From sequence record NC_048053.1: 64,000 bases of DNA. One strand, written 5' to 3'. Below the pieces are notes generated by a model. The model made no database searches. It worked only from the letters and a program-made list of their open reading frames with translations, and was not told the origin of the DNA. The position numbers were made by a program, and so were the translations under genes. Shown here piece after piece: positions 37,068 through 53,854 of the stretch (position 1 is the first letter of the stretch; the number at the start of each line of letters is the position of its first letter).

Positions 37068-37070
37068 CGT

Positions 37071-38927: not shown

Positions 38928-39289
38928 ATATCAAACGTTTCATACAGAGGCACTTTGCTACGTGGTTTTGCGTTGACTATATGATTGTGTTGTCTCCGAA
39001 TAATGTACAGGCAGAAATCACGCGCCACGTTCGAATCGGAACCAAGATTTTCAGTTTCTCGGACAAGAACATTATCGGTCAAATTACGCGCACCCAAGAA
39101 ACTGTAAATTGGATGCGTAAGGGTTCATTCATTTCCGGCAACTCGACGATGGCGAAAGCGCTTACCAAAGAGTATCAAGAATTCTCGCAGTCTTCGCACA
39201 AGAGTTTTAAATCTTATCGCTCTGCGAAACTAGCTCAATCGTTGCTGGATACTCTCAAAATTTCGAAACCAATTATGGAGTCAAAATGA
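38924..39289 (+). CDS. Hypothetical protein
   Basis: GTGA overlap, GGAG SD. Confidence 0.7.
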   Translation: MNIKRFIQRHFATWFCVDYMIVLSPNNVQAEITRHVRIGTKIFSFSDKNIIGQITRTQETVNWMRKGSFISGNSTMAKALTKEYQEFSQSSHKSFKSYRSAKLAQSLLDTLKISKPIMESK

Positions 39290-39996
39290 GTCTGGCAGAT
39301 AAGATCGGCAGTGGCGAAATGGAAGTTGAATATAAAAATCGCGTCACGCGTTTAGCGCAGGCAATGGCGCGAGGCGAACTTCCTATGCCGCGCAGCATAA
39401 TTGACTACAAAAACTTTGTTCATGTTGAAGTCGATTATCAATCGAAAAATATTATTACTGAGAACATGGTTTCTGCGCGTGCTACGATTCCGTTGGGAAA
39501 TGGGCTTATGTGTATCTGCCCACATAACGAAAATCTGAAATCTATCGAAGGTTTCATTTCGTATAGCGATGCAATCGGAAGAGTAGTTGAAAAAGCCGTC
39601 GCATCTGCGGAAACTCTCATTAAAAGTGCGATCAACGAGGCACGCGAAATTTTACGCAGTAGTCTCTATGTGCCTCCGCTGTTCCTGCTGTCAACCGACA
39701 AAAAATCTGTAAAGAATTTATATAGCTGGTTGACCGAAAACACGCAGATCGATGAAGGAACTATCGCCGGGATTATTTCTGTCACTGAAATGAATCCGCT
39801 TGATGTTAGTTATCTACGCGTGTCCGAAGGTAAAGTAGAGCCTATGGACTCAACCGAATTTGCTTTATCGTTAAGCAGTCATTTCAACTTCACGTCTATT
39901 CTGAATTTTGTTTCGTCGCACAAAACAAAAGATATTCCGTGCATGGATGAAGTGATCCAATACCACAAACATGTTTCTATTGCCAAAAGGTACTAA
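39286..39996 (+). CDS. Hypothetical protein
   Basis: ATGA overlap, GGAG SD. Confidence 0.7.
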   Translation: MSLADKIGSGEMEVEYKNRVTRLAQAMARGELPMPRSIIDYKNFVHVEVDYQSKNIITENMVSARATIPLGNGLMCICPHNENLKSIEGFISYSDAIGRVVEKAVASAETLIKSAINEAREILRSSLYVPPLFLLSTDKKSVKNLYSWLTENTQIDEGTIAGIISVTEMNPLDVSYLRVSEGKVEPMDSTEFALSLSSHFNFTSILNFVSSHKTKDIPCMDEVIQYHKHVSIAKRY

Positions 39997-39997
39997 A

Positions 39998-40702
39998 ATG
40001 AAAGAGAAAGGACAAAAAGCTACTCCGGTGCGCGGTTCCGCAAAATCCGCTCCGATTGCCCCCATCACTCCGGCAACTACCGGTTCCCGAACAACTGCGC
40101 CTGCGCGTGTTGTCACCAACAACGAAAACTCTCCGATCCGCGTGCTGGCAAATCTGTCTGAATCGCTCGCAACTTCCTGTGGTGTATTCCACGAAGCAAT
40201 GGCGAAAGTCGGTATGTATTCTCTCGGCGCAGAAGGCATTGCTGATCGCGTTAACGATCTGCTGTCTGCTCAGAATAGCGATGTGCAAAGCTATCAAAAA
40301 GAAGACAACTCCGCTGCTGCAACTATCGTGTATGCAGGACGTATGCTGGCTTTAACTTCTGCGATGTTCGAAGCGATTGTTTACGGCGTGGAAGACAGCA
40401 AAAAGGCATGTGATGGCGAAGAAGATCGCGAAGCACTGGCAACGGATAAAACGTTTGCAGGTCGCCGCCTGTCCGATGCGTATCTTGACGCGTGCTCTAC
40501 CTCCAATACCGCTCGCGATCAACTGGACAGTATTTCGATTTCTATTTTCGGCACCGAAGTAGAGATCGAACGTGCGGCGTCTGCCTGTTCTGACAGCATG
40601 TGTGTTGGCGTTGCCTTCATGCTGGAAGCGATGGTTCGTCGCATGGACAATATGCTGAATGCAGTCAATACGCTGACGTATCGCGTAAACGAAAGCATGT
40701 AA
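39998..40702 (+). CDS. Hypothetical helical-bundle protein
   Basis: Disordered N-terminus, amphipathic helices. Confidence 0.75.
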   Translation: MKEKGQKATPVRGSAKSAPIAPITPATTGSRTTAPARVVTNNENSPIRVLANLSESLATSCGVFHEAMAKVGMYSLGAEGIADRVNDLLSAQNSDVQSYQKEDNSAAATIVYAGRMLALTSAMFEAIVYGVEDSKKACDGEEDREALATDKTFAGRRLSDAYLDACSTSNTARDQLDSISISIFGTEVEIERAASACSDSMCVGVAFMLEAMVRRMDNMLNAVNTLTYRVNESM

Positions 40703-40736
40703 TTCCTTTTCAACATTTAATCAGGAAATATCTACA

Positions 40737-41492
40737 ATGGCAGAACGTGATAAAAATACCGGGCGTTTCCGGAAAAGTGAAGGCAAGAAAGAAGTGCAAC
40801 CGCAAAAAGAAGATGTGCAAGAAACAGAACTTTTCGAAGCACAAACTGAATCGGAATCCCTACCTGATTCTATTTCTATGCAGTCTTCCGCTGTAGGATC
40901 GTTGGCGCAGGATCTCGAACTGCGTTTCTGCAATCTCGGCCTCACAACCAAAACTCCGGTTTACGAGTATTTCAACTGCGAAGATGATTGCGATGAGGAT
41001 GAAGGGCAAGAACTCTCATCCGATGAAGAAAACTATCACTACGCGTTTGCGAACATCGCAAATCGTTTGTCTTCTTCAAATCGCGCCGCTGGCACCAACC
41101 ACCGCGCATTCAACGTTGTCCGTTTCCCGGCAATCAATAGCCTGCTGGCACTGAACTTTGTTCTGAATAGTGCAATGCGTGCATTCGATAACAACAACGG
41201 CGAAGCGATTCGTTCGTTCAGCGAGCGCACTGGTGATGGTTTCGTTGGTTTCGGTGAGAACGAATGTTTCTTCAACGAACTGGCTTCCAACGCACGTCGT
41301 CTCATGAACGAGTTAAGCATCAATCTGCTCGGTCGCGAAACGGTACACATCGATGGCGAAGAGTCGCTCAACTATGAGCGTGTTGAATCGCAAAACCTTC
41401 TGGATCATTTGTCTGGCGTTTCTGGTGTTATGTCAACCATTCTCGCGCACGGCAAATCATTCGAAAAACAGTTAGGCGAACTGCTGGCGTAA
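40737..41492 (+). CDS. Hypothetical acidic helical-bundle protein
   Basis: AGGA SD; last gene of + arm. Confidence 0.75.
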   Translation: MAERDKNTGRFRKSEGKKEVQPQKEDVQETELFEAQTESESLPDSISMQSSAVGSLAQDLELRFCNLGLTTKTPVYEYFNCEDDCDEDEGQELSSDEENYHYAFANIANRLSSSNRAAGTNHRAFNVVRFPAINSLLALNFVLNSAMRAFDNNNGEAIRSFSERTGDGFVGFGENECFFNELASNARRLMNELSINLLGRETVHIDGEESLNYERVESQNLLDHLSGVSGVMSTILAHGKSFEKQLGELLA

Positions 41493-41495
41493 AAT

Positions 41496-41531
41496 AAAAA
41501 GGGGAAGCCGTTTGGCCTCCCCTTTGTTGTT
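41496..41531. terminator. Bidirectional intrinsic terminator between convergent arms
   Basis: AAAAA-GGGGAAGCC-GTTT-GGCCTCCCC-TTTGTTGTTT. Confidence 0.85.
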
Positions 41532-41998
41532 TATAGCGCGACTCCAATTGCAATTAATGCAACCAATCGCGTAATAGTCAGTTGTAGATCCGCTGCTTTC
41601 TGTTCCCTTATTCGCGCATCACGTTCAGCGCTCAAATCTTTCGCAAGAGCGTTCGATCTCAATTCCTCAGACTTCGCCAAATCTAACAGCTTATTCCTTT
41701 CGTCGATTGTTTTATTAAGCACAACAACAAGAGAGTTTACCTCTTCTGTTCTGTTTTTAGCGCCGGAATATAGCTTGATCAAATCAGCCATTCCTTTGTT
41801 ATCCAGTGTTGCCAGCTTTTTACCTTCGAAAACTTTTACTGTTATTTCCGGCTTAGGTGGAACCTCAACCTTCTCCCACGTTAGATTTTCTACGCGGGGA
41901 ATTTGTTGGATGGATGTTTTTTCCTGCTCTGGAATCTTATTAAGATTGACTCCACACCCAACCAACAAAAAAGCAACGAGAAGGATTAACTTCTTCAT
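41531..41998 (-). CDS. Outer-membrane lipoprotein spanin (o-spanin, with hydrophobic C-end)
   Basis: Lipobox LVG-C, coiled coil, overlaps i-spanin candidate by 4 nt. Confidence 0.72.
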   Translation of the reverse strand: MKKLILLVAFLLVGCGVNLNKIPEQEKTSIQQIPRVENLTWEKVEVPPKPEITVKVFEGKKLATLDNKGMADLIKLYSGAKNRTEEVNSLVVVLNKTIDERNKLLDLAKSEELRSNALAKDLSAERDARIREQKAADLQLTITRLVALIAIGVAL

Positions 41999-42276
41999 AG
42001 CTTTTTATATTCCTCCGCTAGATCATCCATATCTTTGTTCTGATCAGCTTGTGCGTCAGGCTTCCTTTCTTCATTCAGCTTCTTAACATCGGTCGCAACT
42101 TCTTCGGCATCTTGCTTTTGTTGATCGATTGCCTTCTCACGAATTTTGTCTTCCGCTTTCTGGAGTTCCGAAATACCGTTGGATGTTTTACTGCGATTGG
42201 GACGAACCAAAAAGATTCCTACCACAATCGCAAGAAATCCAACGAACGCCAGCCAATATTTTTTCAGCTTTTGCAT
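41995..42276 (-). CDS. Inner-membrane spanin (i-spanin)
   Basis: N-terminal TM followed by charged coiled coil. Confidence 0.7.
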   Translation of the reverse strand: MQKLKKYWLAFVGFLAIVVGIFLVRPNRSKTSNGISELQKAEDKIREKAIDQQKQDAEEVATDVKKLNEERKPDAQADQNKDMDDLAEEYKKL

Positions 42277-42283
42277 ACATCAC

Positions 42284-42613
42284 TCACTGATTGTCAGATT
42301 TTGCGTTTGAGTCGTTCGCGTTGTTACGGTTCGATCCGTTGTTGATAAGGTTTTCAGCCATAAACGCAACAGAGAAGAACGTAATGTGATTAGTTTCGCC
42401 AGAACCGATCAGGTTGATGAAAAGGCCAATACTGACGAACACACTCGCTACAGTAGAGAACGGGTTATTCGTCCAGTATTGACGCCAATCTAAACCTTCA
42501 CGTTTTGTCTTTTGAACATAATTGACAAGAACGCCACCTACCCAAGTGCAAACATAGCCGAACAACTGAAACAGATCATAGTGTTTAATTGCTTCTTGCA
42601 CATCAGGTAACAT
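42284..42613 (-). CDS. Probable holin
   Basis: 109 aa, 2-3 TM segments, polar C-tail, upstream of spanins. Confidence 0.6.
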   Translation of the reverse strand: MLPDVQEAIKHYDLFQLFGYVCTWVGGVLVNYVQKTKREGLDWRQYWTNNPFSTVASVFVSIGLFINLIGSGETNHITFFSVAFMAENLINNGSNRNNANDSNAKSDNQ

Positions 42614-42623
42614 GCTTTACCTC

Positions 42624-42863
42624 TTAAAGTTTACTATCGTCGATTTTGCCTTCTTTGAACAACTCCAGTTTACGAGCTTTCCATTTGGCGCTTACGTCAG
42701 TGAAAAATTCGCTTAACTGGTCATCGTCCAGTTGAGAAGGACTACTCACTTCGCGAGCTTCAAGTTCTGCACGAAACAGATTCTGATATTCTTCTTGCAG
42801 CAAAGAAAGATCAGCGCTCAGTGAAGTAAATTCTTTTGCAGCCAATGCCACTACAGTTTTCAT
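42624..42863 (-). CDS. Small acidic hypothetical protein
   Basis: 79 aa ORF, AAGGT SD. Confidence 0.7.
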   Translation of the reverse strand: MKTVVALAAKEFTSLSADLSLLQEEYQNLFRAELEAREVSSPSQLDDDQLSEFFTDVSAKWKARKLELFKEGKIDDSKL

Positions 42864-42880
42864 AAGTGAATACCTTTGGT

Positions 42881-43513
42881 TTACCGGAGTCGTAACCGTA
42901 AATTAGCAATAATAGGACTTTTGCTAAGATCGACCGGAGTTGTTTGGGTAAGCGCCAGATTACCGCCTACCAGTTTAAGATCCGCTGTGCTATCTTCGTC
43001 ACCGACTGTCCCTAACGCAGCGATATAAATTTGGTTGCCGTTGTTCAGTACAGGAATCGTGTCGCTATTGCAAGCAAGATATCCAGAACCATAAGTTACT
43101 GCAAGAGCAAACCACGTTGGTTTTCCTGCGCGATGAATTCTCGCCTGTCTGGTAGCAATAGGATCTGATTCAAAACCATTTGGCGTAGGTGCAGTCATTC
43201 CCGTATCGCCCTGATAGTTAAGATTCAAATCTATTTCATTAACGTCAGAAGCCAGCGAAGAAATAATTCCATAACGCCACCCAACAAAACCCATATACTG
43301 CGATTGGTGCGGAGAAATAACATTATAGAGATTCGCTTGTCGTGGCGCATTGGTCATGCCTGCGGCAAATCGTTGTCGAATAGTTGCGGTGTCCGGCATT
43401 GTGCCGTCGAAAAACATTAATGCGGCAGGCAACGCAGTCATTGAAGAACTACCGCTTTGCTTCTGCGCCCAACGATAAAAAAGAGCGCGGGGAGTTCCGG
43501 GAACAAAACGCAT
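42881..43513 (-). CDS. Virion fibre-family paralog
   Basis: FFDGTMP, GKPTWF, GTVGDEDSTADLKL. Confidence 0.7.
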   Translation of the reverse strand: MRFVPGTPRALFYRWAQKQSGSSSMTALPAALMFFDGTMPDTATIRQRFAAGMTNAPRQANLYNVISPHQSQYMGFVGWRYGIISSLASDVNEIDLNLNYQGDTGMTAPTPNGFESDPIATRQARIHRAGKPTWFALAVTYGSGYLACNSDTIPVLNNGNQIYIAALGTVGDEDSTADLKLVGGNLALTQTTPVDLSKSPIIANLRLRLR

Positions 43514-44421
43514 TAGCTTGCCTCCATTACGCTTGACGGTAAAGCAATTCGTGCAGAATGTATATTAGGAGAAATGCCGTCGCGTGCAACTGTATCGGAA
43601 ATGGTGATATCCGTTCCAACATCGAGAATCAATCCAATATAGTTATTTTTAACACCGTCAACCATATCGCTCGAATAAGACAGATCGCCAGTAGGACGAA
43701 TCAAAACAATTTTATCAATTGTCTCATTAACGAAAGCGTTATCCTTCGGCAATACTTCCCACAAATAAACAAAACCTTTCGCAGCGTTGCTCAGGCCGGT
43801 ATAGCGAATATAACGCGCTTTGAAATTAACGTAACCTGTACGTGCAGTGACTGGAACGTTAGTCCACGTAACCCCATCCAGACTGTAATCAATTTGAATT
43901 GCAGTGTAGTTGGTTGTGTTGTACGCCATCATTGTGAACTTGCGGAAATCAAAATCTGTTCCGTAGTCTGCAATCATCGCGCCCGGTGTTCCTCCAGTGT
44001 AACCACCAGTAGGATAAAATTCATATTCGCGAGTGTTCTGCGGGAAGTATCCGGAATAGTTACGCAGCAATCCCAAAACGTTCGTTCCGTCATATGTTGC
44101 TTGCGTATCTTGCGGATAAATTCGTACAGGGAATGCTTGCACATAAAGCAGATCGTTTTGCGATCCATCCTGATAGAACTTCGCACCATATCCGGGATAA
44201 CGGGAATTGGAATTTCTGTGAGAGAGTGTGACTGTGCTATTAAAGTTTCCTGTAGCCACAAGAGAAACATCTAAGAAGCAACTTGCACGAACGTGTTTTA
44301 AATCTTCTCTGATATCGCCAGTGGGTTCCTTCCCACTGACCATAAACAGCGCTCCACAAATATTGTTTTGCGCGAGAAAATCCATAATACGGTCGCGAAC
44401 AGTTTTCAATTCGACGAGCAT
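43513..44421 (-). CDS. Virion fibre-family paralog with discoidin (F5/8C)-like insert
   Basis: MVSGKEP; YSLDGVTW..KARYIRY. Confidence 0.7.
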   Translation of the reverse strand: MLVELKTVRDRIMDFLAQNNICGALFMVSGKEPTGDIREDLKHVRASCFLDVSLVATGNFNSTVTLSHRNSNSRYPGYGAKFYQDGSQNDLLYVQAFPVRIYPQDTQATYDGTNVLGLLRNYSGYFPQNTREYEFYPTGGYTGGTPGAMIADYGTDFDFRKFTMMAYNTTNYTAIQIDYSLDGVTWTNVPVTARTGYVNFKARYIRYTGLSNAAKGFVYLWEVLPKDNAFVNETIDKIVLIRPTGDLSYSSDMVDGVKNNYIGLILDVGTDITISDTVARDGISPNIHSARIALPSSVMEAS

Positions 44422-44431
44422 ATTATTTTCC

Positions 44432-44986
44432 TTAGTATTGGATATTAAGATCCGTCATGCGATAGCCTTGACCGAGGACGATATTGCTACCAACGATTTT
44501 TAATTCCGCGTCGCTGTCTTCATTGCCGCACGTACCGATAATGATATCGTCAACACTAGTGCCTCCTGTGAATGCTGCCCACGTACTAGCATCCGTAGTT
44601 GACGCACTGGAGCGCATTGCAACAAAGAATGTTGGAGTTCCGTTTGCAGCGCCAATCAGATCGGTTGTAACAGCGGTAAAGTTCACATTGATCTTTCTGT
44701 TACGCGAACCATCTGCATTTTTTCCAATCGTTACTGTAGGACGACGCCCTACGGTGAGGGAATAATGCTGACAGCCTAAGAACTGAGTTTGCGCGATTCC
44801 CAAAGCCGCCAGAAAAGTAGCTGGCGCAATAGTCATATTCTGCGCAATTGCAGCAGGCAAAACAAGATCAGGCATCGTGCCATTAAATAAACCCACTCGA
44901 CACTGAACGCTCGATGAAGTAGGGGTAAAAATTTCCATCAACGCAGTGAGTGCTTTTGATGCAACCATATCCTTATTAGAAATCAT
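44432..44986 (-). CDS. Virion fibre-family paralog
   Basis: LFNGTMP, GTPTFF, GTCGNEDSDAELKI. Confidence 0.7.
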   Translation of the reverse strand: MISNKDMVASKALTALMEIFTPTSSSVQCRVGLFNGTMPDLVLPAAIAQNMTIAPATFLAALGIAQTQFLGCQHYSLTVGRRPTVTIGKNADGSRNRKINVNFTAVTTDLIGAANGTPTFFVAMRSSASTTDASTWAAFTGGTSVDDIIIGTCGNEDSDAELKIVGSNIVLGQGYRMTDLNIQY

Positions 44987-46065
44987 AATGCCCCCAATTC
45001 AGTAATAGGAAGAACAGTCGTAAAGAACGGAGGATACAAATTCGATCCTTGTTCGAACGTTAGACCCGTCGGAATGAAAAGATCCGTTGTTGGGATTTTC
45101 TTAGGATCGTCTGTTACAGTGTACGCGGATAGAGCGACATTTCGATCATCCATCAACGCTTTTTCATTAGCGAGCATGATATTGCAACTGGCGGTTGTAC
45201 CCAATAAGCCTGAATCGTATGTTGCCTGAGACATATTAAATGGCATCAAAATAACATGACCGATTTTTCCAAAGGTGCGAGGAGAACCGTTCACATACTT
45301 TCCAAAGAAACGCAAGCCGCTAGGATACAGCCATTGCTGTACTCGAAGAATTCGAGTACGGAAATAACGAGCGGTAACTTTTCCGTTTAAAATCGGAACC
45401 ATTGTTGCATCGTTTGCAGTAGGCTGAACGTTCATTGTGGCAGTAACATCTGTCCACACTCCATTAATCTGAGCTTGAAGAACAGAGTTAAACATGGAGT
45501 TAGTTGCTTCACCCGTCTGTCCAGAAATTCGCATCACGCCTGTAATTTCAACATCAGCGCCAAAATCATATTCAGCCACAATTGTTTTGGTAGGATCTGC
45601 CGGATCAAGTTGCGCCCAAAAACCGCCAGTCGATGTAGCGAGAACATTTACGGAAGCAGCAGAACCAACAAGGCGAGGCATCTGGTCCATTGCAAACATA
45701 TTGATGATTTGCTGATTTGGCGTACTTGCCATGTTTGCGTTTGACGTGTCATTGAGATCACGATAGCGATTGATTTTTGTTTTTGGTAAAACTTGCTTGC
45801 CATAAACAGTATCAACTTCTTGCCACGCACTGTGCAGCGCCCAAAGGCGTGATTGTTCTGCGCGGTTCAGAGGCTGCATGATCATTTTGCCGCCAGTTGA
45901 ATACTGACCATTCATGTAAGGAACAGCAACCAAACAATCGTTAATGATTTTTTGAATATCCGGCGCATCGAGTTGAGCTTGCGTTGGAATAGTTCCTTCC
46001 ATGAAGAAAGCCATATACAAAGAAGACGCTACCACGCGTTTTTCTTGAAGATCTAAAAGTTTCAT
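44983..46065 (-). CDS. Virion fibre-family paralog with discoidin-like insert
   Basis: FMEGTIP; YDFGADVEITG..NGVWT..TARYFRTRI. Confidence 0.7.
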   Translation of the reverse strand: MKLLDLQEKRVVASSLYMAFFMEGTIPTQAQLDAPDIQKIINDCLVAVPYMNGQYSTGGKMIMQPLNRAEQSRLWALHSAWQEVDTVYGKQVLPKTKINRYRDLNDTSNANMASTPNQQIINMFAMDQMPRLVGSAASVNVLATSTGGFWAQLDPADPTKTIVAEYDFGADVEITGVMRISGQTGEATNSMFNSVLQAQINGVWTDVTATMNVQPTANDATMVPILNGKVTARYFRTRILRVQQWLYPSGLRFFGKYVNGSPRTFGKIGHVILMPFNMSQATYDSGLLGTTASCNIMLANEKALMDDRNVALSAYTVTDDPKKIPTTDLFIPTGLTFEQGSNLYPPFFTTVLPITELGAL

Positions 46066-46661
46066 ACATCCTCGCTGATTTTCATTCGCAGACGTTCAAC
46101 TGCGAAATTGATTTTGTAAGTTCCATCGCCGTTGTTCACCAACGGCACGCCCATAGTCAGGAAGTCAGTGAAACTTAGTTCAAAGAAATTATAACAAGCC
46201 TGAGACGCGTTAACCGTACCGGATGAACTATTCTGCATACAGGCAATCAATGTTGTGAAATTAGTTGATGCAAGCGCAGTGCCTAGCGTGAAATCCATTG
46301 CCATATAGCGACCGTCATTCATCATTTCAATTCGACAACAAGCACCAACGCTTGTATGTAGAACAGAAGTAATATCCGTTCTGTTTGCTGTTAACCATGT
46401 ACGAATTTGAGTAACGGTCGGGCCATCACCATAGGTAGCGAAAATATTATGCCAATCGCTATCCGTCATCGAACCGCCAGTTAATGCAAGAAAGTTTGTA
46501 TCTGAATTTATTGTGCTGTCATAATCCAAACGTTCATCGCGTGCCTCTGCTGCACTAGACCCCTGATAGTTCCAAATACCAACGGCAGTGTTCACGCTAT
46601 TAGCGGCAGTCCAATCAATTTTCTGGCGAATGTTTCGAAGTGCTTTTGAAACAATCATCAA
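46062..46661 (-). CDS. Virion fibre-family paralog (divergent)
   Basis: WNYQGSSA; coupled in the array. Confidence 0.55.
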   Translation of the reverse strand: MMIVSKALRNIRQKIDWTAANSVNTAVGIWNYQGSSAAEARDERLDYDSTINSDTNFLALTGGSMTDSDWHNIFATYGDGPTVTQIRTWLTANRTDITSVLHTSVGACCRIEMMNDGRYMAMDFTLGTALASTNFTTLIACMQNSSSGTVNASQACYNFFELSFTDFLTMGVPLVNNGDGTYKINFAVERLRMKISEDV

Positions 46662-47581
46662 AGACTCCTGTTATTAAAACGAATCTTCGGACAGTAGAGA
46701 ATATTTTCTCCATCGCTCACAAGAGTTCGAAGAGTAAACGGTTTTGGAGTTCCATCGCCGTGACCAACTTCTTCCGCGAAATATGGAATCAACGGACTCT
46801 TTTGAAAATCTCCGCAAACTCGCGTGTTAGTGTGCGCAACCACAACCCAATCGGGAAGAGTAGTTGGCGGCGTTGTGTATGGCTGCGAATCACTAAGCAG
46901 AGTAATTGCGCCCATAGTAGTGAACGTGCCTGTAGCATAAATGCGAAAACGTTTTGCTGTTTGCGGATTCGATGCTGCATACATTGTTGTGTCACCAGTC
47001 ATAGGCGACCACGTTCCCAAACTTGTTTCAGTACCGTCATCAGCAACTGCATTCACGTTAAAAATGAGCGCGGTTCCTTCACGCACAAGATGCGTAAGTT
47101 TTACAGGCGAATCAAACTCAACAATAAGATTACCATCGCCTACAGTTTCCGGACGATAATCAGCACCAATCAAAGGAGAAGCGCCTGCAAACAAATGGGA
47201 GATAGTTCTTTTTGAAGCGCTTGTTTCCAGAATGCGATTCGGAATCAATGCACGAAAATTAATTCCCCAAATATTTCTGTAGAAGCTAACACCTTTATAG
47301 AAATAGCGAGCCTGTGGAATCAAATGCACAATGTTTGTTTTACTGATAAAAGAAACTACTCCTTTAGAAACTCCTGCGCATTTGTTGTAGAGATCCGCAA
47401 GAGAATCTTGTTTGAAAATCTGTGCAACAGCCGCTTCATTTGCAGGCAGAGCACCGGGCATTAAAAATGCTGTCCATGCAGCACCTGTAAACATGTGGCG
47501 CGTAACAGTATTCTCTGCGGTGTTTCCCGCACGCGCTCCGAACATACTCTGTGCGCGAACATGCGAATCAATTATTTTCAT
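46658..47581 (-). CDS. Virion fibre-family paralog with discoidin-like insert
   Basis: FLMPGALP; VEFDSPVKL..AKRFRIY. Confidence 0.68.
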   Translation of the reverse strand: MKIIDSHVRAQSMFGARAGNTAENTVTRHMFTGAAWTAFLMPGALPANEAAVAQIFKQDSLADLYNKCAGVSKGVVSFISKTNIVHLIPQARYFYKGVSFYRNIWGINFRALIPNRILETSASKRTISHLFAGASPLIGADYRPETVGDGNLIVEFDSPVKLTHLVREGTALIFNVNAVADDGTETSLGTWSPMTGDTTMYAASNPQTAKRFRIYATGTFTTMGAITLLSDSQPYTTPPTTLPDWVVVAHTNTRVCGDFQKSPLIPYFAEEVGHGDGTPKPFTLRTLVSDGENILYCPKIRFNNRSL

Positions 47582-48048
47582 TATCCTACATGGCCTCCGA
47601 CCGGAATAAATACATAGTCAGGTTCCTTCACACTGATTGCACTAACAAGGAAATCAACAATCGGGTTATCCTGAGCAACGTACTCGATGCCATTTGCTTT
47701 CGGCGTAAACGGCGCAGAACTTACATATGTGTTGTCCAAATCTTTCGCTTCGGTGTTCTGCGTATTCATTTGCGGAAACACAAAGTTTTTCTGCCACTGC
47801 GTTCTGAGATACTGAGAACTTTCTGGATACACTAAAGAACTTCTCACCATCCACGGACGCATGAGAATGTACCCTGAGAATTGATCGGCAGTTAAAATCA
47901 GAGCGTTTTTACTGACAGCACTGAAACCGATAACGTAACTTGTATCGAAAACAATTTGAACGGATTTCAATTGCCCTCGAAATGCGCCCCAAACTAAACC
48001 GTTCTGAATAAAATAGTTCTTATCATACGCAGGAACGTTAACAATCAT
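47581..48048 (-). CDS. Virion fibre-family paralog (short, divergent)
   Basis: GAFRGQL; coupled in the array. Confidence 0.5.
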   Translation of the reverse strand: MIVNVPAYDKNYFIQNGLVWGAFRGQLKSVQIVFDTSYVIGFSAVSKNALILTADQFSGYILMRPWMVRSSLVYPESSQYLRTQWQKNFVFPQMNTQNTEAKDLDNTYVSSAPFTPKANGIEYVAQDNPIVDFLVSAISVKEPDYVFIPVGGHVG

Positions 48049-48061
48049 TTCTTTCTCCTGC

Positions 48062-49081
48062 TTACAGTTTGTTTATTGTTGATTGAGCCAATCCATACCC
48101 CGCACCATTCGCGGAAGATAGATAGAATTGCCCGATACGGAAGATGCTCAATTTAGACAAATCGAACGCAAGCGAATAATCAACAGGAGTTGAAAAACTT
48201 GTGTCGCTTTGTTTGTACAGTTTCAACTGCACGCCGTTCACATACAAACGAACAATACCGCCAACACGCCGCAAAGTGAGAGTCGATCCGTACTGAACGT
48301 TTTCAGAAACATAGATTTCATCTGCGTTGGTCTGTGTGCGTGTGACAATATAGCGAATCATCTGCGGAGAATTCGACATGTACTCAAAATACAAAGTAAG
48401 GCCGTCAACAGGTTTATTGTTTGACCCAATTTCACTGGTAAAAGAGAACATCGGAAAAACGGAAAAACCTGCATTGAAATAGTTGATTGCTCCAATAAAT
48501 TCGAAATCACCTGTTCCAATCTGGCGCATCAGACCTGTTTGAATATCGTCGAACTGATAGTACGGCGGATCTGCGTATCCAGAACGAAACCAGATTTGAG
48601 GAAAAGTTGCAGACGAAACAGGGATGGTATCGATGTTCTGCAAGCGCAATGCAAACGCATTAACAGTTACAACACTTCCTTCGCCCGTTGAGTCTACAGA
48701 AGAACCAGAATCAACATGTAATAAATTTACGTCTTTTCCGATCTCAAAAGAGAATGGAACTATACCGCCTAAAACAAGATGCGTAGGTTTTCCGATTGCG
48801 CTGCATGTGATATTGCATTTCGAAAAGTTAAGCTGATTTCCTACCAGCGTGCGCGTACAATCATTTCCTGTTCCGAGCAGTACGCCTATATCACTTGTCA
48901 GTTTTGTAACGTCAAAATAATAGCCTGCGCCATTTGGCCTGAAATTCAAGCAAGTCAAAAGATCCTTTTCTGTCTTGCCTGTATTCAGTGAAATAACGTA
49001 AGCGGCTTTATCGTCTGAGGCAGACGCAAATAAACGCGTTAGCTGCGGAATCAGACTCAAATCAAACACTTTGTATTCCAC
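48062..49081 (-). CDS. Virion fibre-family paralog with C-terminal beta-sandwich
   Basis: GKPTHLV, EIGKDVNL; RRVGGIVRLYVNG. Confidence 0.65.
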   Translation of the reverse strand: MEYKVFDLSLIPQLTRLFASASDDKAAYVISLNTGKTEKDLLTCLNFRPNGAGYYFDVTKLTSDIGVLLGTGNDCTRTLVGNQLNFSKCNITCSAIGKPTHLVLGGIVPFSFEIGKDVNLLHVDSGSSVDSTGEGSVVTVNAFALRLQNIDTIPVSSATFPQIWFRSGYADPPYYQFDDIQTGLMRQIGTGDFEFIGAINYFNAGFSVFPMFSFTSEIGSNNKPVDGLTLYFEYMSNSPQMIRYIVTRTQTNADEIYVSENVQYGSTLTLRRVGGIVRLYVNGVQLKLYKQSDTSFSTPVDYSLAFDLSKLSIFRIGQFYLSSANGAGYGLAQSTINKL

Positions 49082-49107
49082 GATTTCACCTTATAAATTC
49101 AATCAAG

Positions 49108-50682
49108 TTAAATTTTCTTTCCCTGAACTATTTGGAAGTTCTTAATGTAGGCCGTCGGCAAACTCGCCGCACCGTAGACACCCAACATTTGAATAGGTTG
49201 CAGTGTGTACGGAAGGATTGTGTATTGGAACGAATCAACTACGGTGCCATCCACGCTGAATTTATGTGTTCCTGTGTCTGAATCGTACTGATACACAACA
49301 CGAACAAAATCAGTTGTAAGCAATGCTGTATAGTTAGCAAAAGAACGAGCAACTTTAGTTCCTTGTTGGTTGTTCCAGATACAGAATCCAGTTTCGTTGC
49401 TTCTATCCAAAGATAAAATAAAACGATCTGTGTACGAAGTTTGTACCACAATTAAATCCATCTCCGCATTCGAGGCAGTTGTATCTTGCCGATAATCAAA
49501 CGAGAGATAGAAAGATTTAGTAAAATCAATATCAACGGTGGCGGGAAACGACAATCGCGATCCAGATGTGCCTCTAATGCTACCGTCGCTTTGTTTAGGC
49601 CATCCGGTAAACGTCAAATCGTTTCCTAGATAGTCTTTTGACGGACTGCTATTAAAATTCTCTGCCGAGATTGCGATACGTGCATTAGGTTCAATCCACG
49701 AAGGCAAAGTATTTGCAGCGCTTAAAGTTTTCGCCGTGCGTACTTGCAACACTTCCGGGAATTCACCTGTAGAAATTGCGAGTGATTCGAGTTCGATGAG
49801 TTCACCACTTCCTTTTGCGCCAACCTTAACAGCAATCATGCGAATGTCTGCGGTTCCTGCGGCAAGCGCACCGTTATTGCTATCAGCGATCAACAGAATT
49901 GCGTAACCGATATTTTTTGTTACTTTCGTAGTTGATTTGTCGCCAATGCTAACAGGAAGACAACGACGCACCGAAGAGTTTCCTACAGCGCGTAAAATAT
50001 CAGTTGTTATTGCGCTAGGTGCAGCGTTGGTTGCTACGTTTACAGGAACAGATAAGTTAACCGATGTTCCGGAAGCAGTAGCGCCAGCAGTTGTTGATGC
50101 CGCGATGATCTGCAAACTAGCCGCCGCGTTTTTGTTTGGCGAATCAGACAGAGCAGCGTCAAAAGTTATCAAACTATCAAACACCAGATCCGCAACGGTT
50201 GCTGTTTGCGCTGTCATATTTCCAACGTAATCTGTAAGCTGCATCGGAGCAGAAACAGGGAAGCCGGGAAACAGCCCAATGGACGGATGCAATTTCATTT
50301 TCTTATTGCCTGTCAGCAAATCAGTCGCATACGCCGTGTCAATATCAAACGTGGATGCGCTCGCTGTAGTGCGACGAGGAATAATATTTTTCGGATAGTG
50401 AATCGTTACGCCGAGTTTTGGATCGTACACACTGCCGGGAACTGCTTTAATTCCGTGTGTGTACGGCTGCGACATTAGCAACCCTTCCGATGTAGGTTGC
50501 AAAACGATTCGACTCGCACCAACACAATCAGCAATAAGTTTACGATGATCTAAAAAGTATTGCGAAAGATCCGAAGGAATTGTTCCTTCGAAAAAATACG
50601 CTTCTACTTCAATTCCGGTACTCCACGTTCCGGGAAGTTGCGCCACGGAAAACGGAAGTAAGTTAGAACCTAAAAGCCTCAT
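49108..50682 (-). CDS. Virion fibre-family paralog with C-terminal LamG/ConA-like domain
   Basis: FFEGTIP, KVGAKGSGELI; FYLSFDY..HKFSVDG..IKNFQI. Confidence 0.72.
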   Translation of the reverse strand: MRLLGSNLLPFSVAQLPGTWSTGIEVEAYFFEGTIPSDLSQYFLDHRKLIADCVGASRIVLQPTSEGLLMSQPYTHGIKAVPGSVYDPKLGVTIHYPKNIIPRRTTASASTFDIDTAYATDLLTGNKKMKLHPSIGLFPGFPVSAPMQLTDYVGNMTAQTATVADLVFDSLITFDAALSDSPNKNAAASLQIIAASTTAGATASGTSVNLSVPVNVATNAAPSAITTDILRAVGNSSVRRCLPVSIGDKSTTKVTKNIGYAILLIADSNNGALAAGTADIRMIAVKVGAKGSGELIELESLAISTGEFPEVLQVRTAKTLSAANTLPSWIEPNARIAISAENFNSSPSKDYLGNDLTFTGWPKQSDGSIRGTSGSRLSFPATVDIDFTKSFYLSFDYRQDTTASNAEMDLIVVQTSYTDRFILSLDRSNETGFCIWNNQQGTKVARSFANYTALLTTDFVRVVYQYDSDTGTHKFSVDGTVVDSFQYTILPYTLQPIQMLGVYGAASLPTAYIKNFQIVQGKKI

Positions 50683-51180
50683 TTAGAATTCCCCTGATAC
50701 GCGATTGACACTCGCATAGAATTTCCCGTTAAGAAAATTCGCGTCCGACAAAATTAAATCCGCACCGCTTCCTTCTTTGCCAATCGTGAGCACTAAGAAA
50801 CCACCGTAAGGAGTTGATCCGATGTTAGTGTTAATCACGATGCAGTTATACAGACTGAGAAACGAATCAACGGTTCCAATAAAACTTGCAGACAAAAGAG
50901 CCTTCACGCGAAACTTTAATTTATTCGTTCCCGTATTCAACCACGAAATAGGATAGCAGTTGTTGAAAGTTGTCAGATTGAATTGCGCAGTAGCACCGAT
51001 TGCAGTCAGCGTTGTTCCTTCACTTACAACGATGTTTTGAGGATCGGGAATATTCGCAGCGGCAACCGTGTGAACGATATTTTCAAGACCGTACTTAACA
51101 GGCGGTTCGTCGGATGGACGCTTACCTTCTGCCGGAATAGGCACGTTAGACGTGTAAATGGGAAGACGAATTATTTCCAC
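50683..51180 (-). CDS. Virion fibre-family paralog
   Basis: TIGKEGSGADLIL; GTG start after AAGGAG. Confidence 0.68.
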   Translation of the reverse strand: MEIIRLPIYTSNVPIPAEGKRPSDEPPVKYGLENIVHTVAAANIPDPQNIVVSEGTTLTAIGATAQFNLTTFNNCYPISWLNTGTNKLKFRVKALLSASFIGTVDSFLSLYNCIVINTNIGSTPYGGFLVLTIGKEGSGADLILSDANFLNGKFYASVNRVSGEF

Positions 51181-51219
51181 GATTTTCTCCTTTGTTTAAT
51201 TCAAATTAGATGAATCGGA

Positions 51220-51228
51220 TACTTACAG
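51220..51228 (-). promoter_or_regulatory. Variant motif CTGTAAGTA (candidate promoter of fibre array)
   Basis: Minus-strand AATCTGTAAGTA in AT-rich spacer ~40 nt before the 51180 start. Confidence 0.4.
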
Positions 51229-51262
51229 ATTAATAATAGGAGAGTAATCAGTAAGAATGAAT

Positions 51263-52315
51263 TTAAAGATCAAGAACCGCCTCGAATTCAAAATTTTCAA
51301 CTTCTTTGGCGGTAACAGTTGGCACTGTATTTGGAAGATCCGAACCAGATTGCAGTAAGTCTGAAATGAAATCTCTCACAACTAAACGTATTTCATCTTT
51401 CCTGCGCGTCGCACTTATGCCAAAACCTAACGAGACATTCTCATCAGGTTCACTCGATGCCACGAATGGAAGTGCAGTCAGATTCTTAGCAACGGCGTTT
51501 GCCGAAGTATATTCAGGCAAGCGATACGAATAAGAAGATCCGTAGGCCGTATAATAGTATTCCTGATAGCTGGAGCGTAACAAATAAATACCGGGCGCGG
51601 ATTCTGTAGTGCGACTAAAATTTGTTGTCCCTACAACGCTGGGAGAAATAGCTGTGGCTGTGGCTTTGCAGTTTCCATCCATTGAAACTTTCAATTGATT
51701 CAAATAGGAAGTGTATACTCGCGTATATTCCCAACGACCATAATAGCTATATGATGAATAGGAGTACGTGTAGTCCTGAGCAACACTTAAATCTACAGGC
51801 TGAGTCGCTTTCAAATTGTTTTGAGTTAAACGTGTTGGCATTAAAATCATTTGAGTTGCCAGCACACTGCCATCGCCCACATAATAACGATACGGAGTGT
51901 TTTTAATTCCTCCGTATCCAATATCTCCTTTCTTCAAAATACCTTGAGTGCTTGTGGAAAAATTGCTTCCGGATTCCCACAAACTAGGTGCGAGACAAAA
52001 CAACTTAAACAGATCAAGAGTTGTTCGAGAAAAAGTTGTTGGGAATGTTAAAGTTGATTGTGTCTCAAGAGGCAAATCTTTTATGTTCATGTATGTGAGA
52101 TAAAGCCGCGCACCATGCACGCCAGCAAGAGGTGAACAATTGAGATTTTTATCGGAATCAATATCGAAAGTAATCGATCTGGCATTTGGAAGTATGTTTA
52201 TAACACTGGCAATGTCAGAAGGCTTCGGTGTGTCTGCATCGAAAAGATATTGTATAGCCTCCGATTCTTTTAGTTCTCTTTGGGTGATAACTGTTCCTAC
52301 ACTGCAAAATTTCAT
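51263..52315 (-). CDS. Probable virion protein, distant member of fibre family
   Basis: YLFDADTP N-motif; Tyr/Ser/Thr-rich. Confidence 0.6.
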   Translation of the reverse strand: MKFCSVGTVITQRELKESEAIQYLFDADTPKPSDIASVINILPNARSITFDIDSDKNLNCSPLAGVHGARLYLTYMNIKDLPLETQSTLTFPTTFSRTTLDLFKLFCLAPSLWESGSNFSTSTQGILKKGDIGYGGIKNTPYRYYVGDGSVLATQMILMPTRLTQNNLKATQPVDLSVAQDYTYSYSSYSYYGRWEYTRVYTSYLNQLKVSMDGNCKATATAISPSVVGTTNFSRTTESAPGIYLLRSSYQEYYYTAYGSSYSYRLPEYTSANAVAKNLTALPFVASSEPDENVSLGFGISATRRKDEIRLVVRDFISDLLQSGSDLPNTVPTVTAKEVENFEFEAVLDL

Positions 52316-52431: not shown

Positions 52432-52462
52432 AAAATAAAAAAGGGAAGGCCGAAGCCCTCCC
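52432..52462 (-). terminator. Intrinsic terminator with UUCG tetraloop
   Basis: Minus strand GGGAGGGC-TTCG-GCCTTCCC-TTTTTTATTTT. Confidence 0.9.
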
Positions 52463-52477
52463 CATTAAATTACTGAA

Positions 52478-53854
52478 TTACGGAGTAACAACAAACTGGT
52501 TAGCACCTGCAACAAACACGATGTAAACTTTCATCGCCTGTGCAAGAGTTACAGTTAGGCTGTTAGCATCAACCAGAGTGATTTCGTCCGGAATGATTTG
52601 TTTACCCGTTGAATCCAGAACAACAACAGTACCGAAACGCTGACCAGCATTGTGCGTAAAGGTGTAAGAGGTTGAACCCTCACCAGTGCCGCCAGTGTTA
52701 TCCTGAACGTAAGTTTTTGCGCTAGTTGCAACGCTATCAACAACAAACTTACGAGTAGCTGCCGCGCCGTCAACTTCCTGCATTTCGCCGGAGAAGATCA
52801 AATGATCAATAGTGCCGCCGTCTGCATCAATGAAGCCAGCAGATTTAACAGCGGTAATATCCAGATCGATAGTTGACGTTTCAGTATTGCGCGTTAAACC
52901 GGAACCAACAATGTTGTTTGCCAGTTGCGCAAAACCAACACCGCCGTTAGCAACGCGAACACCGTTAGCGCTTTTAGAAAGGCTTGCGCCATCCAGCTTA
53001 ACGTTCAGGCCATCGCTATCAACAGAAACACCGCCAGCAGCGTTAACTTTTACAGACAGTTCATTGCCATTCAGATTCAAACCGAGGCCAGCAGTTACGC
53101 TTGCCATACCGCCGAAGTTCGCCCACGCGTTACCATCAAAACGAACGTATTGATTGGTATCGGAGTTCCACGCAATTGCACCTTCCGCGCGATCTTGAGT
53201 AGGAGTAAAGACAATTTCAAAAGCGTCAGTGTGATATTCAACAATCACATCATCAACAACGCCATCGATAGTTCCGAAATCTGCGTGCAGGTTCGCAACA
53301 TCAGTCAGAACATAACGCTTGCCTTCGACTTTTTGCGGTTGAAGGACACCATCAACTTGCATCCCGTCAACGTCTTGCTGCCAGTTCAAACCAGCAAGAG
53401 CATTTTCGATATCAATCTTACGAGCTGCATCGGTGCCATTAACAGGCGCAGCAAGATCGCTAATACCGAAACCGCCAGCAGAAAGATTTGCCGCAAGCGT
53501 ACCTTCTGCGCTAACAGAAAGTTTGCGTGCGAGCAAACCGCCAACGTAACCTTTACTTACAGCCGCAACATCAGCCGCAGCGGATTGATCAGCAGAACTT
53601 AATTCAAGTACGCCAGTCATTGCTGTGGTGCCGTCTGCTTTCACGTAGCCAGACAGATCCGGAGAACTACCTTCACCAAACGTTTTGATCGCAGTGCCAT
53701 CAAAATATTTGTATACCTTATCGGTAGTGTTGTACCAGATCCATGCTTCCTGATTTGCAACCAGCGAACCGAGCGTTGGGTCAGTTGCACGTTTTTCACC
53801 ACGAAGGTTAAAAATCTGAGCACCCGCCATCAACGTCATATTGCCTAGTTTCAT
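52478..53854 (-). CDS. Fibre/whisker-like virion protein
   Basis: DLAAPVNGTDAARK fibre motif, GLGLNLNGNELSV beta repeats, C-terminal FTHNAG domain. Confidence 0.7.
   Translation of the reverse strand: MKLGNMTLMAGAQIFNLRGEKRATDPTLGSLVANQEAWIWYNTTDKVYKYFDGTAIKTFGEGSSPDLSGYVKADGTTAMTGVLELSSADQSAAADVAAVSKGYVGGLLARKLSVSAEGTLAANLSAGGFGISDLAAPVNGTDAARKIDIENALAGLNWQQDVDGMQVDGVLQPQKVEGKRYVLTDVANLHADFGTIDGVVDDVIVEYHTDAFEIVFTPTQDRAEGAIAWNSDTNQYVRFDGNAWANFGGMASVTAGLGLNLNGNELSVKVNAAGGVSVDSDGLNVKLDGASLSKSANGVRVANGGVGFAQLANNIVGSGLTRNTETSTIDLDITAVKSAGFIDADGGTIDHLIFSGEMQEVDGAAATRKFVVDSVATSAKTYVQDNTGGTGEGSTSYTFTHNAGQRFGTVVVLDSTGKQIIPDEITLVDANSLTVTLAQAMKVYIVFVAGANQFVVTP

Follow-up and report, generated by a model that had tools for sequence, protein, structure and literature searches.

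A Tandem Array of Phage Genes Built on a Garland-like β-Sandwich Core, Candidates for the Tail Appendages of Dickeya Phage JA29

At least seven of eleven consecutive minus-strand genes of a jumbo myovirus (JA29_075 to JA29_085, positions 42881–52315, with products of 155–524 aa) are built on one small β-sandwich core. These genes are paralogous and have a core-plus-insert architecture, the folds of JA29_077 and of the C-terminal domain of JA29_083 are described below, and the array is conserved across genera while changing in copy number. The favoured reading, to which we give an even chance, is that the genes encode accessory proteins of the tail or baseplate, a family with a garland-related fold that has expanded in tandem and forms an adhesin network on the virion. 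Since the garland-like core is combined in several members with domains resembling sugar-binding ones, the array proteins are promising, though unproven, candidates for the unexplained tail appendages of this phage.

Source and Genomic Context of the Array

The window, a stretch of 64,000 nucleotides from record NC_048053.1, belongs to Dickeya phage vB_DsoM_JA29 and is 100% identical to MH460461.1, with identical coordinates. This giant myovirus infects a plant pathogen and, in agreement with the initial annotation, is a published member of the “hairy Myoviridae” (PMC6143709). The coordinates also bear out the eleven genes, their sizes, and their overlaps, which are located at 43513 (1 nt), 44983–44986 (4 nt), 46062–46065 (4 nt), 46658 (1 nt), and 47581 (1 nt). 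The proteins are assigned here to families A′ (075), C (076), A (077), B (078), D (079), E (080), F (081), G (082), H (083), I (084), and J (085). No transmembrane segments are predicted in any of them.

Upstream of the array, JA29 carries gene 086 and a collagen-repeat tail fibre gene (093); homologues of 086 in PaBG and AR9 are annotated as virion proteins. In the syntenic phage Y3, the array is found at the 3′ end of an unbroken same-strand block that begins with the prohead protease and continues with capsid, sheath, tube, baseplate, and tail fibre genes. The array stands at the end of the morphogenesis block, in a context of late structural genes. The Y3 record describes the array genes as hypothetical and the neighbouring homologue of 086 as a virion protein.

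Two strong hairpins resembling intrinsic terminators flank the region on the minus strand. The first one, between 086 and 085 (52442..52463), has nine pairs, six of them G-C, and the second one, 3′ of JA29_071 (41498..41525), has twelve pairs, seven of them G-C; each is followed by a T-run. They mark the upstream and downstream boundaries, respectively, of a single terminator-bounded transcription unit, which starts with JA29_085 and comprises the array together with the lysis-like genes that are co-transcribed with it. The array is closed in all arrays examined by a small conserved gene, here JA29_074 (42624..42863, minus strand, 79 aa), which retains 43–58% identity in all genera and keeps its position in L010, L012, L036, L041, and L038. 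Further downstream, JA29_071 to JA29_073 (41531..42613, minus strand) are annotated as lysis-like small membrane or lipoprotein genes. The N terminus of JA29_071 reads like a lipoprotein signal, with a hydrophobic stretch ending in Cys, and the corresponding block of the metagenomic relative L038 includes a Holin_2-3 (PF13272) gene.

Short Proteins and the Core Fold

The minimal core is represented by JA29_077 (44432..44986, minus strand, 184 aa), whose AF2 model (pLDDT 87.7, pTM 0.84) consists of an N-terminal helix followed by a β-sandwich of about eight strands. A Foldseek search of the PDB with this model gave a single significant match, 9rkv_A (E 6e-4, prob 1.0, TMt 0.61); with TMq 0.49 and 13% identity, and with a predicted model as the query, the similarity is moderate. 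Entry 9RKV, from phage 7-7-1, comprises two fibres, one long and one short, and gp014, the small garland protein, and by elimination the matched chain of 139 residues is gp014.

JA29_075 (42881..43513, minus strand, 210 aa) is related to JA29_077 by BLASTP (3e-8) and hhalign (99.5%), and both belong to phrog_17152. The best conserved member of the array, JA29_084 (50683..51180, minus strand, 165 aa), is 53–56% identical to its orthologues in other genera. Its similarity to family A is limited to the C-terminal 70 columns in hhalign (48–58%) and reaches 78% when the C-terminal 90 aa are compared. The short family consists of 075, 077, and, with a weak but probable link, 084; these short proteins (about 165–210 aa) are the core alone. 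The GenBank label of 084 as a membrane protein is rejected, since a maximum 19-residue hydropathy of 1.45 indicates no transmembrane segment.

Long Proteins and Their Inserts

Four further members, 076, 078, 080, and 083, form a long family, which alternates with the short form along the array. In these proteins of about 300–360 aa, both terminal parts of the short core are retained and enclose an insert of ~200 residues. Within this set, hhalign links 076 to 078 (C vs B, 96.6%), 080 to 083 (E vs H, 95%, 230 columns), and the N termini of B and H (78–93%). Family A matches the N and C termini of each long family in collinear order, including both terminal segments of 080, and metagenomic bridging sequences agree with such a core-at-both-ends architecture. 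When only the N-terminal 90 aa were compared, the pairs A–E, A–H, B–E, B–H, E–H, B–J, and H–J scored above all 66 reversed-profile controls; for the C-terminal 90 aa, these pairs were A–I, A–E, B–C, C–J, E–H, and H–I.

The initial annotation placed discoidin-like inserts in three of the long proteins, and for two of them the signal is weak. JA29_076 (43513..44421, minus strand, 302 aa) has a discoidin/CBM32-like region at residues ~152–218 (nt 43768–43968) and JA29_078 (44983..46065, minus strand, 360 aa) a comparable insert at residues ~146–241 (nt 45343–45630). Both matches to Pfam F5_F8_type_C are below threshold (E 2e-4 and 1e-4, respectively, at 22–23 bits vs the cut-off of 28.2), only two of the 16 B-family members match this profile, and the best match of the C-family profile among PDB sequences, to a CBM32 domain, is found at E 0.2 only. 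In the third, JA29_080 (46658..47581, minus strand, 307 aa), F5_F8_type_C has no match.

Evidence for the ConA/LamG-like C-terminal domains, also part of the initial annotation, is stronger; the one in 083 is confirmed by a structure model and the one in 082 by homology to 083. JA29_083 consists of a core (residues 1–320; 49723..50682, minus strand) and of an appended ConA/LamG-like β-sandwich (residues ~330–524; 49108..49695, minus strand), assigned by AF2, Foldseek, and BLAST. The core, modelled with moderate confidence (pLDDT 60–87, residues 104–161 disordered), comprises an N-terminal strand–loop–helix, an inserted β domain, and C-terminal strands. The C-terminal domain (pLDDT 85–96) matches many ConA-like lectin/glucanase and LamG proteins in BFVD (Foldseek, E 1e-9 to 1e-7), and its Pfam match to Laminin_G_3 (E 1.2e-3) is below the cut-off. 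Residues 324–521 match the C-terminal halves of the G proteins of 351–364 aa in relatives (BLAST, E down to 1e-30), so that in other genera the LamG-like domain of 083 is placed on the next gene. Structural neighbours of the 083 model include a LamG-like “structural protein” of 244 aa from the hairy phage CBB.

Members with Weak or No Links to the Core

The initial annotation described eleven paralogues with a common core and, in several of them, lectin-like domains inserted into it or added to its end. Seven genes are linked through the core, and most genes follow this pattern; 079, 081, and the N-terminal domain of 082 are not linked to it, and the links of 085 are too weak to tie it to the core. 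All-vs-all profile comparison likewise connects proteins within the long and short sets, with nothing above controls for 079, 081, and the N-terminal domain of 082.

JA29_079 (46062..46658, minus strand, 198 aa) is a short protein whose family profile gave a borderline hmmsearch match to the insert region of H (1e-4 in a set of 350 sequences), which hhalign did not reproduce. JA29_081 (47581..48048, minus strand, 155 aa) keeps its position in all arrays and has no profile link above controls in hhalign, in the 90 aa tests, or in comparisons with the NCTB long family and family A. JA29_082 (48062..49081, minus strand, 339 aa) combines a G-type N-terminal domain (residues 1–150) with a second LamG-like C-terminal domain (residues 151–339). 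The former is 43–50% identical to the N termini of G proteins in relatives, which in distant arrays are only 141–150 aa long, and has no profile link to the core families above controls. The latter is closely related to that of 083 (hhalign 99.5%) and is all that ties 082 to the array; the string GKPTHL is located in the unlinked domain.

The fastest-evolving member, JA29_085 (51263..52315, minus strand, 350 aa), is weakly similar in profile comparisons to B/H at the N terminus and to C at the C terminus (scores of 24 vs 19.6 and 17 for the best controls) and has no hhalign link to the NCTB long family. It is 30–45% identical to its counterparts in metagenomic JA29-like phages, compared with 60–70% for 080 and 083, and is present in 0 to 5 copies among relatives.

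Arrays in Other Phages

Copy number differs among related phages. In addition to 085, the adjacent long–short (B–A) pair varies; it is present once in JA29 and twice in Y3 and Alexandravirus, which have two copies of B, and fHe-Yen9-02 carries an extra B–A pair beyond gene 074. The array itself is conserved across genera.

A separate array in NCTB (BN7874_183–198, 16 genes) includes five short and nine long paralogues and links the short and long families of JA29. Matches of the JA29-type A profile to the NCTB long proteins are split into two collinear segments, such as residues 11–79 and 281–351 of a protein of 356 aa, with E of 1e-5 vs 0.26 for the best reversed decoy. The NCTB long family is in turn aligned by hhalign, along its full length, to B (97.4%, 304 columns), E (97.1%, 243 columns), H (97.3%, 280 columns), and C (94.3%), so that 076, 078, 080, and 083 are full-length or half-length homologues of it (94–97%). 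In Foldseek searches of BFVD, the 077 model matched both short and long NCTB proteins, and the 083 model matched the same long ones (seven in all), together with the Y3 orthologue of H and the Yoloswag orthologue of E; the match of the 077 model to the JA11 orthologue of 083 had a probability of 0.21 only. As in JA29, the NCTB array is tandem and contains two forms with the same N-terminal motif, their homology being supported by HMM, hhalign, and Foldseek. Unlike the JA29 array, it occupies a different locus, where it does not follow a homologue of 086 but adjoins a “phage tail assembly” gene; its long and short genes do not alternate strictly, and all its members are annotated as hypothetical.

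These data bear on the view that the genes are unrelated orphans that share short motifs by chance. BLASTP within JA29 links only two pairs, each gene except 075/077 has a separate PHROG, and the A profile, searched with HMMER against 1.8 billion sequences at E ≤ 0.001, found 45 clusters, all of 62–211 aa, and not one long protein. Against this stand profile–profile probabilities of 94–99%, split HMM matches far better than decoys, the Foldseek cross-matches of two models to the same NCTB proteins, and the motif statistics. All 13 motif strings quoted in the initial annotation are found in the proteins named there. A strict form of the N-terminal motif matches four of 154 six-frame ORFs in the window, each of the four an array gene, while shuffling the eleven proteins 2,000 times at constant composition gave no match in 97% of cases and at most two in any. 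The N-terminal motif, which is kept among A, B, E, and H orthologues of other genera, is not due to chance. The chance reading, hardly tenable overall, is regarded as refuted for seven genes, a refutation that does not extend to 079, 081, and the N-terminal domain of 082.

Possible Function of the Array Proteins

According to the favoured reading, the proteins would be synthesised late and incorporated into the virion at the outer parts of the baseplate or tail fibres. They might assemble through the common core as homo- or heterodimers, with the products of adjacent long and short genes as likely partners. In the resulting multi-copy network, the domains resembling carbohydrate-binding ones would face the host surface, and the network would contribute low-affinity adhesion or make the fibres more stable. 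Among solved structures, the nearest relative of the core builds a multi-copy garland of dimers around the tips of tail fibres, in line with a common assembling core that displays different heads. A survey of the literature other than the Y3 paper found no proteomic or structural placement of any array member in the virion; the Y3 paper may hold mass spectrometry data.

The initial annotation proposed instead a heteropolymeric fibre or decoration lattice, plausibly the hair-like appendages of hairy jumbo myoviruses; in this reading, the hairs along the tail sheath would be beads-on-a-string filaments assembled from the common core. JA29, AD1, and Y3 are all described as hairy and all carry the array, a long heteropolymer would suit many different paralogues, and even in phAPEC6 the hair proteins are still unidentified, with only the fibre bases visible. 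Lu11 and CBB are, however, also reported as hairy (PMC6143709), and tblastn searches of all phage records, in which 078, 084, and a long protein of NCTB served as queries, found no homologue in Pseudomonas or RaK2-like phages. In addition, an HMM profile search found every array family absent from the syntenic locus of PaBG, the solved relative is located at fibre tips around the baseplate and not on the sheath, and the fibre genes upstream, the collagen-repeat one among them, are just as plausible as sources of the hairs. We consider this proposal unlikely, with a small but real chance of being right.

It is also conceivable, if quite improbable, that the array proteins serve in morphogenesis only, for example as chaperones, scaffolds, or adaptors of the tail fibres encoded upstream, being made late and missing from the finished particle. 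The array directly follows tail-fibre genes, its genes are small and translationally coupled, and none has a virion label in Y3, though a neighbour has one. Nevertheless, chaperones would not usually come as eleven to sixteen diverged paralogues, some of them bearing lectin-like domains, the one solved structure with a significant match is that of a virion component, and swapping of C-terminal domains is typical of surface-exposed binding proteins.

Comparison with Known Systems

At 300–360 aa, the long proteins of the array have about the size of T4 gp8, which is compatible with a role as baseplate-proximal connectors that join the N termini of fibres to the wedge. T4 gp8 and A511 gp105, the BW3TFN connectors, have the garland fold and form dimers arranged as beads-on-a-string chains on an extended peptide (PMC10811340). 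Neither protein is among the best 50 PDB matches of the 077 model in Foldseek, and the Pfam gp8 family is unmatched at E up to 1. The genes for T4 gp8 and A511 gp105 lie together with those of the baseplate wedge, whereas the JA29 array follows fibre genes, with the wedge genes far upstream. Rapidly diverging proteins with lectin-like heads would also be expected at an exposed site more readily than at one buried in the wedge. Such a connector role is highly doubtful.

Under the favoured reading, the closest parallel is the garland of the Agrobacterium phages 7-7-1 (gp014, 9RKV) and Milano, a small β-sandwich like the JA29 core and its only significant fold neighbour in the PDB. Garland proteins are encoded as paralogous copies beside receptor-binding genes and form many-copy dimers around fibres; the Milano paralogues gp125 and gp127, from a receptor-binding gene cluster, make homo- or heterodimers (PMC10811340). 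The two systems differ in that there is no sequence similarity (13% identity), the JA29 profiles finding nothing among PDB sequences, and in that the JA29 core is larger (165–210 aa vs about 139) and has an N-terminal helix. Unlike the garland, the JA29-type family is expanded to 7–16 members, half of them carrying either an insert of ~200 residues or appended LamG-like domains. The garland proteins have an observed place on the virion, whereas that of the JA29 proteins is a predicted one. With respect to their heads, the proteins resemble the lectin-type modules of other phages, given the ConA/LamG-like C-terminal domain of 083 and the weak F5/8 type C similarity of 076 and 078; in JA29, the putative lectin-like domains are located on or within a garland-like core, whereas in other phages they are carried by a trimeric fibre shaft.

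Organization and distribution of the array

The window corresponds to bases 1–64000 of MH460461.1 (Dickeya phage vB_DsoM_JA29, genus Salmondvirus), a phage whose morphology is described by its authors as "hairy Myoviridae" (PMC6143709). The array at 42881–52315 comprises 11 minus-strand genes, JA29_075 to JA29_085 (075–085 for brevity), each of them annotated as hypothetical and belonging to PHROGs without an assigned function. The overlaps of 1–4 nt between genes that were reported in the initial annotation are borne out by the gene coordinates, and the motif strings quoted there are all present in the window's own proteins. The label "membrane protein" attached to 084 is rejected, since the protein has no hydrophobic segment.

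The array is found in the same order in Erwinia phages Y3, Alexandra, Yoloswag, and several pEa_SNUABM phages, as well as in Dickeya phage AD1, Yersinia phage fHe-Yen9-02, and several metagenomic contigs. In the direction of transcription it starts with family J (085 in JA29; ~350 aa, 0–5 copies), followed by families I (084; 165 aa), H (083; ~318 aa), G (082; 141–364 aa), F (081; ~150 aa), E (080; ~300 aa), and D (079; ~190 aa). Family D leads to one or two B–A pairs (078 and 077; ~355 and ~175 aa), after which come family C (076; ~300 aa), family A′ (075; ~200 aa), a gene of 79 aa, and then small membrane or lipoprotein genes. The A-type genes are each located directly 3′ of a long gene in every JA29-type array examined, and across the arrays the B–A pair behaves as a duplicating unit. 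The identity of the array genes to those of JA29-like metagenomic phages is 30–70%, and that of neighbors such as 087 and 073 is 82–92%. Word-indexed protein searches retrieved close relatives only, and a scan of IMG/VR with family E mostly recovered the known genera again.

Some annotations in the related phages deviate from this arrangement. The family D gene of Alexandra (9730–10274 in its record) is annotated as two ORFs of 66 and 112 aa (Alexandra_86 and Alexandra_85) separated by one break, with the family profile matching the second ORF only. The start codons of Y3_082 and Y3_086 (12004–12996 and 8872–9675 in the Y3 record) were probably called too far downstream, because the annotated starts exclude the N-terminal part in which all orthologues have the conserved motif.

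Genomic context

The array lies at the end of a long block of morphogenesis genes on the minus strand. In Y3, this block runs from the prohead protease through the capsid, sheath, tube, VgrG, baseplate, and fibers to an ILEI/Calx-beta protein, a collagen-repeat fiber, the homologue of JA29_086, and finally the array. Two strong terminator-like hairpins, at 52442–52463 and 41498–41525, bracket a single unit in which the array is joined by gene 074 and three lysis-like genes. The latter, JA29_071 to JA29_073 (41531–42613), follow on the 3′ side of the array and resemble a lysis cassette, with no endolysin gene adjoining them. The start of 071, annotated as a membrane protein (spanin-like), resembles a lipoprotein signal, a hydrophobic stretch is present at the N-terminus of 072, and 073 encodes a small membrane protein.

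On the opposite side, JA29_086 (52478–53854) is labeled "T1SS secreted agglutinin RTX", and its homologues in PaBG, Bacillus phage AR9, and relatives are annotated as virion proteins. Its C-terminal region of ~60 aa recurs in JA29_091 and in small neighboring genes of related phages (families of 73 and 198 aa). The fiber genes include JA29_095 (58498–62031), which encodes a protein of 1177 aa with Calx-beta and ILEI domains. JA29_093 (57423–58241) is a tail fiber protein in which collagen triple-helix repeats (Pfam E 4e-14) are combined with a gp53-like domain at the C-terminus, and it could alternatively account for thin, flexible appendages.

Short and long forms of a common core

Within JA29, BLASTP gives just two links, one between 075 and 077 and one between the N-terminal ends of 078 and 083. 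Comparison of the first family profiles with hhalign joined 075 with 077 (probability 99.5%), 076 with 078 (96.6%), 080 with 083 (95%), 078 with the N-terminus of 083 (78%), and family A with 084 (58%). Many pairs were unlinked in these first alignments, and the links emerged once distant arrays, both metagenomic and that of phage NCTB, were added. The N-terminal motif, conserved among the orthologues of families A, B, E, and H, consists of a hydrophobic strand followed by Gly-Thr-x-Pro and then by a helix; in the window it is confined to the array genes, and shuffled sequences essentially never produce it. Looser motif patterns were either too permissive or too strict and were excluded from the results.

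When the 90-residue termini of the families were compared against reversed-profile controls, the N-terminal pairs A–E, A–H, B–E, B–H, E–H, B–J, and H–J exceeded all controls, as did the C-terminal pairs A–I, A–E, B–C, C–J, E–H, and H–I. Bridging sequences from metagenomes matched two families simultaneously. In each long family, the N- and C-terminal segments are matched collinearly by the short family, and unrelated neighboring families show no such match. In a HMMER search of the whole library, the profile of family A retrieved 45 clusters, all of them short, and by itself gives no link between the short and long forms. Searches of PDB sequences with the profiles of families A, H, B, and C found nothing meaningful.

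A separate tandem array of 16 genes is present in phage NCTB (BN7874_183–198, 33236–46907 in its record), with five short, nine long, and two unassigned members. It adjoins a gene annotated as "phage tail assembly", at a locus different from that of the JA29-type array, and no array is present in NCTB at the locus 3′ of the 086 homologue. The array was recognized elsewhere in the genome by its gene sizes, which match the Foldseek hits in BFVD one to one. The JA29-type short-family profile matches the five short NCTB proteins, and on the long ones it aligns as two collinear pieces ~200 residues apart, with E as low as 4e-6; reversed decoys for this profile on NCTB reached 0.01–0.4 at best. The NCTB long family aligns with families B, E, and H at an hhalign probability of 97% over 243–304 columns, and with family C at 94%.

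From the profile, terminus, and distant-array comparisons, 076, 078, 080, and 083 are assigned to one long family, and 075 and 077, as well as, less surely, 084, to its short form. As judged from these alignments, the long form is built of the termini of the short core placed around an inserted domain. The initial annotation considered all 11 genes to be paralogues, and this view is retained for the members just listed, with the same reservation for 084. It does not extend to 079 and 081 or to the N-terminal domain of 082, for which profile comparisons gave no link to the core families, and 085 is linked to the other families only weakly.

Predicted core fold and its similarity to garland proteins

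The AlphaFold2 model of 077 (pLDDT 87.7, pTM 0.84) consists of an N-terminal helix and a β-sandwich of about eight strands. In the model of 083, the confidence of the core is moderate and the C-terminal domain has pLDDT of 85–96; the core elements follow in the order of a strand, helices, several strands, a helix, and four C-terminal strands. In our reading of the two models, made without superposition, the core of 083 would parallel 077, with an insert of ~120 residues located before the C-terminal strands.

A Foldseek search of the PDB with the model of 077 gave one significant match, 9rkv_A (E 6.2e-4, prob 1.00, TMt 0.61, TMq 0.49), with the second-best match at E 0.19. Entry 9RKV, "phage 7-7-1 tail fibers", contains a long fiber, a short fiber, and the small "garland" protein gp014, 36 homodimers of which are arranged around the distal fiber domains. 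We infer that chain A is gp014, because it comprises 139 aa compared to ~298 and >587 aa for the fibers. The predicted fold of 077 is thus similar to that of a solved garland protein. In phage Milano, two paralogues from the receptor-binding cluster, gp125 and gp127, assemble into homo- or heterodimers and form the garland, the fold of which was described as resembling T4 gp8 and A511 gp105, proteins whose dimers form beads-on-a-string chains (PMC10811340). Neither T4 gp8 nor A511 gp105 is present among the 50 best PDB matches of the 077 model, and a Pfam search of the array proteins gave no gp8-type match. In BFVD, the model of 077 matches family A orthologues, short and long NCTB proteins, and many proteins of 110–140 aa from uncultured phages, and the model of 083 matches its own orthologues, families G and E, the same long NCTB proteins, and many ConA/LamG-like proteins.

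Lectin-like domains and their exchange

Residues 330–524 of 083 (pLDDT 85–96) match many annotated ConA-like/LamG proteins in Foldseek, with E between 1e-9 and 1e-7, including a "structural protein" of 244 aa from the hairy phage CBB; the score against Pfam Laminin_G_3 is 19.4 bits, below the threshold of 27.6. The model places this domain in the ConA-like lectin/glucanase (LamG) superfamily, and the C-domain of 082 is homologous to it (hhalign 99.5%). The ConA/LamG-like domains initially proposed for both proteins are therefore upheld, for 083 by the model and Foldseek and for 082 by homology. The proposal of discoidin-like inserts fared less well. The resemblance of 076 and 078 to discoidin/CBM32 domains is plausible, although their scores against PF00754 (F5/8 type C; 21.8 and 22.9 bits, respectively) fall below the gathering cut-off of 28.2. 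Matches to PF00754 occur in 2 of the 16 members of family B (E<0.01), and the family C profile matches a CBM32 among PDB sequences at E 0.2.

Domains have been shuffled at the boundary between families H and G (49108–50682 and 48062–49081). In JA29, 083 corresponds to the H protein of the relatives joined to a LamG-like C-terminal half that is carried on G in those phages, and 082 to the N-domain of G with a second LamG-like domain. In some metagenomic relatives, the homologues of 083 reach 670–737 aa with further C-terminal material.

Possible role in the virion

The comparisons described here establish the family itself with its architecture and folds, as well as its late structural context and the dynamics of its evolution. 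Beyond these, a role at the tail can be proposed. The array proteins would join the particle at the periphery of the tail and assemble via their common core, with the products of adjacent long and short genes as the probable partners, and the lectin-like domains would be presented to the host envelope.

One possible form of such an assembly is that the array encodes the hair-like appendages of this lineage. Heteropolymeric filaments would arise from core dimers threaded like beads on a string, and the inserted and appended lectin-like domains would make such a filament a long, multivalent, glycan-binding "hair", with copy number and heads reshuffled between genera by duplication of long–short gene pairs and by domain transfer. 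We regard this form as rather unlikely, because the solved relative is located at the baseplate, other fiber genes are also candidates, and BLAST-level searches do not find it in further phages that were reported to be hairy. The array is carried by the JA phages, AD1, and Y3. No tblastn match was obtained in Pseudomonas phages (Lu11, PaBG) or RaK2-like phages, a search that remote homologues could escape, and HMMs did not find the array at the syntenic PaBG locus 3′ of the 086 homologue. By these searches, the array does not appear to be common to all phages reported as hairy. The PaBG locus retains the 086 homologue, followed downstream by three small genes, after which unrelated large adhesin-like genes replace the array; the product of one of them, gp215, has been observed in PaBG virions. 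The region gp225–gp215 (23078–41656 in the PaBG record) encodes large, paralogous-looking proteins of 587–635 aa together with a fibrinogen-like protein and others that resemble adhesins. The N-terminal stretch of gp218 recalls the N-terminal motif of the array, with a weak HMM match (E 0.07).

Comparison with known systems

Biocontrol is one use considered for the hairy jumbo phages that infect plant pathogens, which have conspicuous appendages and a complex adsorption apparatus. Eleven "hypothetical proteins" are now replaced by a defined family, for which there is a confident model of the core, a structural relative that has been solved, a map of the insertion points, and a set of lectin-like heads. 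The family is conserved and expanding in at least six genera, with the NCTB array being independent. Its members are concrete candidates for the interpretation of virion proteomes and cryo-EM maps, and the array exemplifies the growth of giant phage genomes by tandem duplication of, and domain grafting onto, a small structural module. We found no description of an expansion to 7–16 members, of a β domain inserted in the core, of appended LamG-like heads, or of the pairing of long and short genes. Garland and tail-fiber-network proteins as such are already known; the garland genes are paralogues located within or beside the receptor-binding cluster, and the JA29 array likewise lies directly after the tail fiber and 086 genes.
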